Below, in pieces: positions 20,201 to 23,200 of a DNA stretch of 64,000 nucleotides. Under the pieces are notes generated by a model that was given only the letters and a program-made list of their open reading frames with translations, had not been told where the DNA came from and did not search any database. Every line of letters starts with the position of its first letter. Within the stretch, counting starts at the first letter, position 1. The DNA lies in assembly GCA_002269645.1 (NCBI GenBank), contig NIVC01000471.1, positions 186,001-250,000 on the forward strand, given 5' to 3'. This DNA is from Macrostomum lignano (lineage: Eukaryota). The translations under genes were made by a program, and so were the position numbers.

Positions 20201-23200
20201 TGTGTCTAGATTGTCCAGGTGTGTCTAGATGTGTTCAGGTGTGTCTAGATGTGTTCATGTTGTCTAGATGTGATTAGGGGCATCTAGTTGAATGTGATAA
20301 AAATTTGTGCTTAGGTACAAGAATGAACAATAATTATCTACTGCCGTGCAAGCTTTCGCATTGGAAACGAATAACCAATCTTATAGTTTAGCATATCTTG
20401 ACAACGCAGCAAGTCGCAGACTCTGCTTCGAACCTTGCCGAAGGCTCCGCAATGAGTCTGTCTGCCTCACCCGCCAACGATCGACCTGTAATTCATATAG
20501 CAGTTTTCTTTTTATCGCATGTTTGTTAACTCGTTGTTAGCCTTTGTTGTCATGTTTTTGTGCATGGCCTATTTATTGAAATGAAAAATGCTGGTTTCCA
20601 AACTGATGTTGTGACTGTGAGTGAGAGACATCCGTCACAGTGACAGCAAAGTTTACAGCAGTCAACTTCAAGCAGTATTCAACCGTCAGAAAGTATTCAG
20701 TGTACATTTATATTAATTTTATGTCTTGTTGTTGGGAACAATCTCGATAGCGTTGAATTAAATCCCATGTACATTTTTAGATGGGATTTAATTAGATGCG
20801 GCAGAATTCTATCATTGGCCTTCTAAACCAGACAAGAAAAATGGCTTTTGGGTGGTCCTTAATGTAAATTATTTTAGCACAATCCGTGTGCCCACAAACA
20901 GGGCCGAGACAGGGACTTCCAGAGATCTCTAGTGATGCTATTTTTAGGAGTCCCTGGCCTGTGCAACGGTTAGACCTTCTCATACCCACCAAGTTCTAGG
21001 CGGTTTCCATGGGAGCTCTTGCCATTCGTCGGAAAAATGGTATAAAAATTCACACAGGTTTTGCAGTGACATTTCTTCTAGTGTAATACTTTAACTAATA
21101 ACCTTTCTGATAAGCCCTACCTGCAGAAGAGCTTTTTGCTTCTGGCTTTTTGCTTCTGCATTCTTCTTCTGCAACATCAACGGACACATTCACCGTTAAG
21201 GTGAGTAAATCATTAATTTAATATCATAGATTACATCAAATTATTAAATTAATTTATCTCAAAAAACAAATCAAAAGTTTCATAATTAAAGTATTGTAAT
21301 TGTATGGGCATTATTATTATCCTAATCAGCGCCCTTCCCCCGTTTCGGAGGCAACAAGAAAGCGAGGAATTAAAATGTTTTAATAAACTAAAAGTTAAAA
21401 GCTTCCCTTTAAGCCGTGGCTCAGCCCAAACTCTGCCTTTGCTCTACCTGTGGGCTGTGGCTTGGCCTACCAACAGCTTCCAATTGACCCTTGGAATCCC
21501 AGCAACCCCCCCCCCCCCCAATGAGCCGCAGCATTTCAGCATTCATCATAAGCCTTGACATCTCAGCAAGTCCCTCATGATATTGCTGAGATATCGAGGC
21601 TCATGTGGAATTTCTGAGAAGTAGACGCAGATCGAAAGGACAGTTAGGATTGAGCCATGGCTCAAAGGGAGGCTTTAAACATCATTTTCCTAAAAATAAT
21701 ATTGATACAAGGTCATAGCCTACCTGTATTTTATTCCTTTTTGCCTCCCCAACGTCGGGCGCAGGTTGCCATATTAATTATGAGTCTGACTCGGTCTTAC
21801 CTTGCTATTCACTAACAGGTGCGACCACCAACTCAAAATGCGGTATGGATATATAAGAGGCCAGGAGTGGCCAAGCCAGTCATTTGGGGCGACCAGAATG
21901 CGCAACAGACTGTAAATAATATCGTGAACTACATTCGCGATCAGAAGCCAAATGCTCGCTTTGCTAAAATAATGGCGTATCTATGGAGAGAATGGAAACT
22001 GAAGCTGTATTTCTGTGAAAAATTCTGGTATGTGGATTTAAACAGTGAGTACCGGATGCTTCTCAGACCTGTGCAAATGAATGACGGCAGCACCTACGTG
22101 TGCATCGAGATTTACCGACGCCAACACGAGCACGTACCGACGCTCGAGGAGCACAAAACTTTTCTTAACAAATCTTCTTCACCAGAAAAAGCTGAGGAGA
22201 ATTTCCCAGAACACACTCGAGGTAATTCCGCAAATTCCACCAGCACGTGCCGCCAAGAAGCCGCCAAGAAATCTAAAAAGAACTGATGAGGCATGAGCCT
22301 AACTTTGTCATAAACTCACTTTTATTAATATTTAATTAATTTTAAATTCATTTATGGTTAACTCTTAGCTACAAATTTCCTTGCTCAGCACCTGTCTATT
22401 GTTTTAGCTACTCGTAGTTTTGCTTTTTCACTATTAGTGCACGTAGAGTTCAATAAAATTATCCATTTACCTCTTTTCTATTAGCTTAAATAATTATTAG
22501 AAACTTTTAAAATTACTACAAATATATACTTATCAAAAATCAGTTACACATCAGTTAACATCTCCAGAATATTTCTCTTGTCGTGTTGGCTGGCTATCAA
22601 TTATTTTGTTTTATCAGTAAACAATTCACTGCAAATCCGTACTAGTTGAACTCATAAATTGGGCATTGAGTTGAGTTTGGTAAGTTAGTTACTAATGCAG
22701 GGATTCAAGCTTGGAATGGGATGGTGCTTGTTCACTGTCAGGCTTAAGTGTACTTCATGTGTAATTTGTGTTGTAATGTCTTTGACTGTTGTGCACAATT
22801 TTTATTTTAAATTTCTCAAACATATTTCTAAAACATTCTGCAATGTCTCAGATTCTACTGAGTCACTCAGCATCCCAGATTCACTGAGTCTCTCAGTCAC
22901 TCAGCATCCCAGATTCACTGAGTCTCTTAGTCACTCAGCATCCCAGATTCACTGAGTCTCTCAGTCACTCAGCATCCCAGATTCACTGAGTCTCTTAGTC
23001 ACTCAGCATCCCAGATTCACTGAGTCTCTCAGTCACTCAGCATCCCAGATTCACTGAGTCTCTTAGTCACTCAGCATCCCAGATTCACTGAGTCTCTCAG
23101 TCACTCAGCATCCCAGATTCACTGAGTCTGTCAGTCACTCAGCATCCCAGATTCACTGAGTCTCTCAGTCACTCAGCATCCCAGATTCACTGAGTCAGTC

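Follow-up and report, generated by a model that had tools for sequence, protein, structure and literature searches.

A probable lineage-restricted gene nested in a ferlin intron of Macrostomum lignano, with decaying local copies and a tentatively modelled RelE/ParE-like architecture

What is a small open reading frame (ORF) of about 150 codons doing inside a ferlin intron of the flatworm Macrostomum lignano, on the same strand as its host and with further copies downstream? The frame, here called ORF-X, lies in a stretch of 64,000 nucleotides (contig NIVC01000471.1 of GenBank assembly GCA_002269645.1, positions 186,001 to 250,000 of the forward strand). This whole stretch is referred to below as the window, and all positions are given in its coordinates unless another contig is named. 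An earlier note, made from the sequence alone, described ORF-X as an orphan gene family with a signature like that of the RelE/ParE/HigB toxins, and suggested that it could be a toxin-fold RNase or defence effector in an animal. The first copy (X1) is already known, in that its GenBank counterpart is annotated as a hypothetical protein (BOX15_Mlig000471g5, P0001 in our searches) and is uncharacterised. The reading favoured here, with a probability of about 55%, is that ORF-X is a real, transcribed protein-coding gene restricted to the M. lignano lineage, nested in the ferlin gene, probably trans-spliced, with a modelled RelE/ParE-like architecture and with decaying local copies.

X1 is located inside a ferlin intron, since exons with Pfam ferlin matches flank it on the same strand. 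The intron, about 5.8 kb long, separates the exons at 17668-18072 and 23863-24369, and the same-strand nesting reported earlier is thus correct. The open frames reported at 21819-22286 and 48505-48957, both on the plus strand, are also present as claimed, and the second of them belongs to a paralog (X2). The two proteins share 44% amino acid identity over 119 residues (BLASTP, E 2e-33), against approximately 45% in the earlier estimate. Both contain the conserved core F-x-x-V-x-LN-x-x-YRM-x-LRP-x-x-MND-x-S-x-YVC-x-x-x-Y-x-R-x-HE-x-x-PTL-x-x-HK-x-FLN, and conservation is clustered in one block (residues 63-111) and in MRxG[FY] at the N-terminus.

Both paralogs are real; their starts had to be revised. 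Positions 21819 and 48505 are not start codons. At each of them an exon opens, immediately behind a conserved CT[A/G]ACAG acceptor; both exons directly follow ...CTATTCACT[A/G]ACAG, in which a branch-point-like CT[A/G]AC precedes the CAG. The actual ATGs are at 21838 (X1) and 48526 (X2), where the conserved N-terminus MR[YC]G[YF]...QxWP begins (MRCGFLENQWP in X2). The leaders between acceptor and ATG, 19 nucleotides in X1 and 21 in X2, differ by a length that is no multiple of three, and an in-frame stop is found just upstream in both copies; the leaders are thus considered untranslated. Similarity between the copies begins upstream of the acceptor, at 21772, and the block 21772-21818 is 89% identical to 48455-48504 over aligned columns. 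This block contains a near-palindrome, ATGAGTCTGACTC[G/A]GTC, which opens its conserved part (21780-21796 and 48463-48479) and in X2 includes TGACTCA, a candidate AP-1-like site.

The frame of X1 differs between the window and GenBank. P0001 is encoded on contig NIVC01000513.1, where the ORF of 149 amino acids is intact. In the window, the X1 ATG is out of frame and its reading stops early, the G-run at 21886-21889 having four G against five in NIVC01000513.1; this is the sole difference between the two across 620 bp. The main frame of X1 in the window is open back to the acceptor, which accounts for the 155-residue ORF described earlier from 21819. The short G-run could reflect an error in the homopolymer, allelic variation or the existence of a second copy.

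How such a gene may be expressed is suggested by the way the genome was annotated and by motifs at the locus. The M. lignano annotation was built from RNA-seq transcriptional units cut where spliced leader (SL) trans-splicing and poly(A) addition had been mapped experimentally; transcripts that were non-coding or overlapped repeats were dropped from it (Wudarski et al., 2017; PMC5730564). Mlig000471g2 and g3 correspond to a dysferlin-like C2 gene (supplement of PMC12896417), and ORF-X (g5), which carries the same Mlig000471 prefix, therefore shares its transcript-group name with the ferlin. No main-text mention of 'Mlig000471' was found in the literature, and the supplements name g1, g2 and g3 only, not g5. 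It is proposed that X1 has an mRNA of its own, probably set free from the primary transcript of the ferlin by SL trans-splicing at the conserved CAG acceptor 19-21 nucleotides before the ATG and by cleavage at X1's own AATAAA, about 170 nucleotides after the stop. In M. lignano, CAG serves as the core acceptor motif in splicing in cis as well as in SL trans-splicing, and the SL ends in ATG (PMC8629364). The X1 and X2 acceptors fit only the CAG part of the [T/C]TNCAG motif given there (PMC8629364). An SL-donated ATG at 21819 or 48505 would match the reading frame of X2 and that of the four-G X1 in the window, not that of the five-G GenBank version, and the frameshifted X1 might therefore still be translatable.

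The proposal that ORF-X is an orphan family was borne out. Protein databases that included the M. lignano gene models were covered by two word-seeded searches (5.8 billion proteins) and by one exhaustive HMMER profile search (1.84 billion representatives), and the only homolog returned was P0001. The X2 protein has no entry in the databases searched. At E<=10, matches of X1 and X2 in Pfam, NCBIfam and PADLOC did not rise above noise, and the same holds for PDB sequences searched with a profile made from the two ORF-X proteins. As judged from these searches, ORF-X is to be placed among the taxonomically restricted (orphan) genes. An origin of ORF-X from the dsRBD-like exon of its ferlin host was considered separately and rejected, no BLASTP similarity being found between them.

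Comparison of the paralogs gives a coding signal. X1 and X2 differ at 174 nucleotides over 141 aligned codons and both frames are open, an outcome retained in only 0.18% of neutral simulations. In addition, all three of the indels between them are in frame. The Nei-Gojobori ratio of nonsynonymous to synonymous divergence (dN/dS) comes to 0.66 overall and, in the core, to 0.63; dS is approximately 0.7-0.8. The coding sequence thus appears to evolve fast under weak constraint. The earlier note had held the family to be older, or evolving faster, than a nearby ferlin duplicate of more than 90% nucleotide identity. Fast divergence is indeed seen; the duplicate was not confirmed, since the window holds no second copy of any ferlin coding exon.

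The protein encoded by ORF-X is approximately 17 kDa and basic (pI 9.2 and 9.7 in the two copies), with no signal peptide. From the alignment of the two sequences, AlphaFold2 gives a model of P0001 with a mean predicted local distance difference test (pLDDT) score of 64.7 and a predicted template modelling score of 0.60, with pLDDT of 75-85 over residues 20-100. The model consists of a strand (2-5), helices (20-35 and 42-53), four strands (57-60, 63-67, 72-80 and 86-94), a helix (103-111) and a disordered tail (113-149). ORF-X would therefore be a compact alpha/beta domain of about 110 residues followed by a disordered, variable and lysine-rich tail. The modelled order, b1-a1-a2-b-b-b-b-a3 (b, strand; a, helix), would correspond to that of the RelE/ParE toxins (b1-a1-a2-b2-b3-b4-a3). 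A Foldseek search of the PDB with the X1 model returned a YoeB/ParE toxin as the top match (6n90_A, E 0.012, probability 0.93, target-normalised template modelling (TM) score 0.50), and the top 50 included HigB chains (4mct, 4ypb, 5ixl and 4px8; TM 0.45-0.57) and YafQ chains (4mmj, 4mmg and 4ml0; TM about 0.5). A Foldseek search of viral predicted structures gave no match. A RelE/ParE-like architecture is thus plausible, at perhaps one chance in three. Since the modelled architecture resembles these toxins, the most likely activity of the protein would be nucleic acid binding, possibly with cleavage; R95, H97, E98, Y93 and H106/K107, all conserved between X1 and X2, are candidate active-site residues by position only.

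Several observations weigh against the favoured reading, and the first group of them concerns the fold. No Foldseek match reaches E 1e-3, and the fold rests on a single model from an alignment of two sequences. The model of the X2 core reaches a pLDDT of only 47.5; it shows the same helices and strands with no confident packing, and ParE-type chains are matched with a probability of only 0.11-0.14. Sequence comparison is also unfavourable. When E. coli K-12 relE and its relatives were aligned (24 sequences), hhalign gave a probability of 0.13% for ORF-X against this alignment, and a RelE hidden Markov model (HMM) ranked X1 98th and X2 52nd among 502 sequences that included 500 shuffles. In Pfam, NCBIfam and PADLOC, no RelE/ParE family was matched at E<=10 by either copy. 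The likeness to the C-terminal sheet of RelE/HigB/ParE proteins, which had been noticed by eye, is thus no better than chance, whereas the idea of a RelE/ParE fold keeps weak support from the element order and the leading Foldseek matches. The earlier note had named an unrelated predicted fold as a refutation, and the idea survives this check, though only weakly.

These results also bear on a stronger claim, namely that ORF-X is a true RelE/ParE homolog, acquired by an old bacterial transfer or changed by extreme divergence, and acts either by ribosome-dependent endonucleolytic cleavage of mRNA or by poisoning gyrase/topoisomerase, for instance as a toxin that is selfish or serves defence. The identity of the top Foldseek matches (ParE/YoeB, HigB and YafQ), the element order, the basic character of the protein and the position of the conserved Y72, R73, Y93, R95, H97 and E98 on the sheet region are all in its favour. 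So is the only stretch aligned by hhalign, EYRMLL against GYRLVY of RelE, in which R73 meets the invariant Arg of the RelE alignment. However, a true homolog would have to be reconciled with the complete lack of sequence signal described above (hhalign and profile searches alike, both copies scoring below many shuffles with the HMM), with Foldseek E-values above 0.01 that the X2 model fails to reproduce, and with the absence of any bacterial relative among the 1.84 billion proteins. In a by-eye positional comparison, the beta-2 lysines of RelE have no counterpart in ORF-X. Moreover, no antitoxin-like partner ORF is conserved beside the gene, similarity between the copies being confined, outside the ORF, to 47 nucleotides upstream and the non-coding 3' flank; ORF-X is thus not a toxin-antitoxin module. 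Overall, true homology is improbable, and membership of the RelE/ParE superfamily is not established. Slightly less probable again is a more specific proposal, in which an animal family with the RelE/ParE fold and no antitoxin is trans-spliced from the ferlin intron, evolves fast with local turnover, and supplies a putative toxin-like nuclease in defence, germline conflict or a selfish toxin-antidote element.

The second group of adverse observations concerns the gene itself. Constraint is weak, with dN/dS near 0.65, and differences per codon position (0.46/0.33/0.44) show no enrichment at third positions. Substitutions affect 28% of the aligned columns in the coding sequence, compared with 11% in the 5' block and 15% in the 3' flank. 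X1 as assembled in the window has no in-frame ATG, X2 is unannotated and appears to be decayed, and both the transcription of X1 and its trans-splice site are deduced from the annotation method and from motifs. The weak constraint, the divergence of the coding sequence, the frameshifted ATG and the state of X2, together with the lack of a homolog elsewhere, would fit the alternative that ORF-X encodes no functional protein and is a transcribed intronic sequence, or an ORF either newly arisen or being lost, which segmental duplication copied together with DNA of the ferlin intron, its frames and modelled fold being fortuitous. Such an origin would, however, leave the two open frames and the three in-phase indels to chance, and it would not predict the concentration of conservation in the 63-111 block and the N-terminus, nor a modelled core with pLDDT of 75-85 from almost no alignment depth. 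The gene also came through an annotation based on transcripts, in which non-coding ones are discarded. We consider this alternative unlikely, though it is the most serious of those discussed here. The density of substitutions in the coding sequence, about twice that in its flanks, could be due to positive selection, conserved elements in the untranslated regions (UTRs) or gene conversion of the flanks, and the pattern fits a fast-evolving gene or one in which one copy has drifted after loss of function.

A different lead came from a phmmer search of PDB sequences with X1, which matched the GH11 xylanases 1h1a_A and 1xnk_A (E 2.7e-4) over X1 residues 22-111 (window 21901-22170). This would make ORF-X a GH11 relic in which the central part of the jelly-roll is retained, with the 'thumb'. 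Scores of 14-25 bits were also obtained when X1 was compared with single GH11 sequences, about 18 in number, where the best of 500 shuffles reached 14.2, and hhalign aligned 27 columns of the 'thumb'. At the family level, however, the likeness vanishes. The lead was tested with 80 bacterial GH11 loci. A GH11 family HMM gives X1 7.9 bits, against 7.1 for the best shuffle, and X2 -2.2 bits (rank 470 of 502). X2 scores 0 bits against single sequences, the two-sequence profile finds no GH11 in the PDB, Pfam GH11 is not matched, and the hhalign probability is 4%. The catalytic nucleophile Glu aligns to a Lys. GH11 chain residues beyond 137 of 191, the part that presumably contains the acid/base Glu, correspond to nothing in ORF-X. 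As for the N-terminal matches, the positions concerned are not conserved in X2, and the models of both paralogs place two helices there. GH11 homology is rejected, the likeness being specific to X1, absent at family level and in conflict with the predicted helices. A xylanase relic is thus the least credible of the alternatives, and the likeness is probably due to chance or is at most a local resemblance.

The copies of ORF-X indicate how the locus has changed. Comparison at the DNA level delineates a unit in which 47 nucleotides of upstream sequence are followed by the ORF, a 3' flank of about 570 bp and a tandem array. No further copy of the ORF-X body was found in the window by tblastn. The 3' flank of X1 is kept in X2 (85% identity over aligned columns) and in a 5'-truncated remnant, R3 (87%). 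The remnant previously placed at 43385-44757 is genuine (approximately 43378-44758, 86-88% identical to the X1 flank), whereas a supposed separate remnant at about 50840-51070 is in fact X2's own 3' flank, split off by a 1.73-kb insertion. R3 adjoins a minus-strand retroelement ORF that is itself truncated (42828-43367); no significant match to its 5' half was found beyond the retroelements, tblastn giving only E 3 at 34908-35027. In X2, the 3' flank is broken by the insertion, the poly(A) signal is gone (neither AATAAA nor ATTAAA is present) and the C-terminal tail is truncated. The neighbourhoods of X1 and X2 are co-linear at 83-89% identity (24431-24665, a 15-bp array, with 51076-52289; 31868-32346 with 52475-52950; 33655-34720 with 52971-53994), which suggests that the copies arose by segmental duplication. 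These blocks are non-coding, and only the units of the 34-bp arrays reach 94-98% identity. ORF-X would thus undergo local birth and death by segmental duplication, with one copy intact, one diverged and decaying (X2) and one truncated remnant.

Alternatively, ORF-X could be an accessory ORF of an uncharacterised mobile element, of which a unit of about 1.1 kb (leader, ORF and 3' flank) has moved within the region. Three copies of the unit with conserved non-coding flanks lie inside 27 kb, and mobile DNA is abundant here, with two elements of the long terminal repeat (LTR) type between 35.5 and 43.4 kb and a GIY-YIG fragment. On the other hand, no terminal inverted repeats bounding the ORF-X unit and no recognisable ends were found, and the copies are co-linear with other blocks (the 15-bp array, and 31.9-34.7 with 52.5-54.0 kb), as fits segmental duplication. 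A mobile ORF would hardly be represented by one protein in the whole library although M. lignano gene models were included; the annotation from which that protein comes removed repeat-overlapping transcripts, and no Pfam transposon domain is matched. Derivation from a known transposon ORF, which the earlier note had named as a possible refutation, was looked for and is unsupported, because the homology searches found only P0001 and terminal inverted repeats are lacking. A mobile origin is therefore very unlikely, and segmental duplication of a resident gene is preferred.

The two LTR-type elements lie head to head. The one at 35503-39408 (plus strand) contains an uninterrupted gag-pol-like ORF of 1301 amino acids, and the other, at 39627-43367 (minus strand), is broken into integrase, reverse transcriptase/RNase H and protease ORFs and ends beside R3. 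The insertion in the X2 flank contains, besides a GIY-YIG nuclease ORF fragment that is possibly the 3' end of a Penelope-like retroelement, an unassigned minus-strand ORF of 112 amino acids (50188-50526), and comparison with Rfam gave no hammerhead. The features of the locus are listed in Table 1.

Table 1. Features of the ORF-X locus and its ferlin host (window coordinates; TRF, Tandem Repeats Finder)
Feature	Position	Strand	Remarks
X1 upstream conserved intron/outron 3' end	21772-21818	+	ATGAGTCTGACTCGGTC at 21780-21796; branch-point-like CACTAAC; CAG acceptor (AG 21817-21818)
X1 5' leader	21819-21837	+	19 nucleotides, from first exon base to ATG
X1 coding sequence	21838-22286	+	149 amino acids; equals GenBank hypothetical protein BOX15_Mlig000471g5 (P0001), RNA-seq-based annotation
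X1 3' flank and probable 3' UTR	22287-22860	+	AATAAA at 22452, 166 nucleotides past the stop
34-bp tandem array after X1	22861-23862	+	TRF, 29.5 copies; reaches next ferlin exon; unit recurs at 44069-44758
Remnant R3	43378-44068	+	Last ~15 codons of ORF-X and 3' flank; AATAAA at 43651
R3 tandem array	44069-44758	+	TRF, 34-bp unit, 20.3 copies; consensus same as 22861-23862
X2 outron end and 21-nucleotide leader	48455-48525	+	ATGAGTCTGACTCAGTC at 48463-48479; AG 48503-48504
X2 coding sequence	48526-48957	+	143 amino acids from in-frame ATG; earlier stop shortens C-terminal tail relative to X1 and R3
X2 3' flank, part 1	48958-49149	+	48994-49149 matches 22264-22428
Insertion in X2 3' flank	49150-50883		1.73 kb; flanks contiguous in X1 and R3
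GIY-YIG nuclease ORF fragment in insertion	49201-49410	+	Pfam GIY-YIG, E 2.5e-5
X2 3' flank, part 2	50884-51068	+	50884-51060 matches 22432-22591; AATACA at poly(A) signal position
15-bp array after X2 flank	51076-52289		
Ferlin exon	16724-17152	+	Pfam C2; upstream of X1
Ferlin exon	17668-18072	+	Pfam C2, E 3.3e-4; upstream of X1
Ferlin exon	23863-24369	+	Pfam C2, E 8.6e-8; downstream of X1
Ferlin exon	24796-25356	+	dsrm_Ferlin, E 1.8e-27
Ferlin exon	31261-31710	+	Pfam C2
Minisatellite arrays	18067-18690, 18958-20272, 22861-23862, 24431-24665, 44069-44758, 47074-48360, 51076-52289		Many others present

Outside tandem arrays, the 20-kb locus on NIVC01000513.1 that encodes P0001 is approximately 99.7% identical to 20.3-28.7 kb of the window; the two are either one locus in different assemblies, allelic versions of it, or copies from a very recent duplication. 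Identity of approximately 99.7% extends over 17.2-31.9 kb, and the two are unrelated upstream of about 17176; the X1 block thus either exists in two genomic contexts or one of the assemblies is chimeric. The break near 17176 corresponds to 4077-4984 of the NIVC01000513.1 locus, in which the shared block is preceded by a third version of a 'ferlin 3'-end' sequence resembling 31.7-34.7 and 52.5-54.1 kb of the window. Minisatellite arrays, with periods of 15, 20, 21, 29 and 34 bp and up to 80 copies, occupy nearly every intron and spacer, and most differences between the window and the GenBank contig lie in them. A 29-nucleotide inverted repeat (21541-21611, 83% complementary, 13-nucleotide loop) about 200 bp upstream of X1 is related to a 30-bp array at 30523-31127. 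Another ferlin intron contains neighbouring minus-strand ORFs at 27054-28805, with a DnaJ domain (28140-28805, E 6e-13) and a TatD-related DNase domain (27054-28103, E 9e-9), which may represent an antisense nested gene. No structured RNAs or tRNAs were found in the window.

If the RelE/ParE-like architecture is correct, ORF-X would be a rare animal case of a toxin fold, lacking an antitoxin and any trace of a bacterial origin in its sequence. This would raise the questions of whether the fold has an independent origin or goes back to an ancient capture, and of the role it plays in a regenerating flatworm amenable to RNA interference and transgenesis. The locus is also a compact example of a nested gene that is probably released by the SL, of orphan birth and death by segmental duplication, and of a coding sequence outpacing its own flanks. 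Like many other lineage-specific genes of this repeat-rich genome, ORF-X is uncharacterised, and its practical value will be modest until expression and activity have been checked.

Among known systems, the RelE/ParE superfamily (RelE, YoeB, YafQ, HigB and ParE; PF05016) resembles ORF-X in the modelled order of elements, in domain size and in basic character. Unlike these toxins, ORF-X is eukaryotic and intronic, is equipped with splice signals, has no adjacent antitoxin and shows no detectable sequence kinship. It also has about 17 extra N-terminal residues and a disordered tail of 37 residues. The mRNA interferases use a Lys/Lys/Arg/Arg/Tyr set in RelE and His/Glu/Arg/Tyr sets in YoeB, YafQ and HigB, and these catalytic residues cannot be mapped onto ORF-X. 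The GH11 endo-1,4-beta-xylanases (1h1a and 1xnk) show a local resemblance to X1, strongest over the 'thumb' (DGxTY..IYR.QR...PSI.G.KTF); the likeness is absent in X2, the catalytic residues are missing and the predicted secondary structure of the N-terminal half is incompatible.

Fast-evolving orphan genes include toxin-antidote selfish elements such as nematode peel-1/zeel-1. ORF-X differs from these in having no evidence of a linked antidote, segregation distortion or toxicity, and the comparison serves as a lead only. Closer to hand are the SL trans-spliced genes of M. lignano that belong to multi-gene units. ORF-X lies within a host intron, not between the genes of an operon; in common with such genes, it shares the Mlig000471 prefix with the ferlin, has a CAG acceptor a few nucleotides before the ATG and carries its own poly(A) signal. 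In its lack of homologs outside the lineage, its rapid local divergence between paralogs and its history of duplication and decay, ORF-X resembles the taxonomically restricted, fast-evolving genes of other animals.

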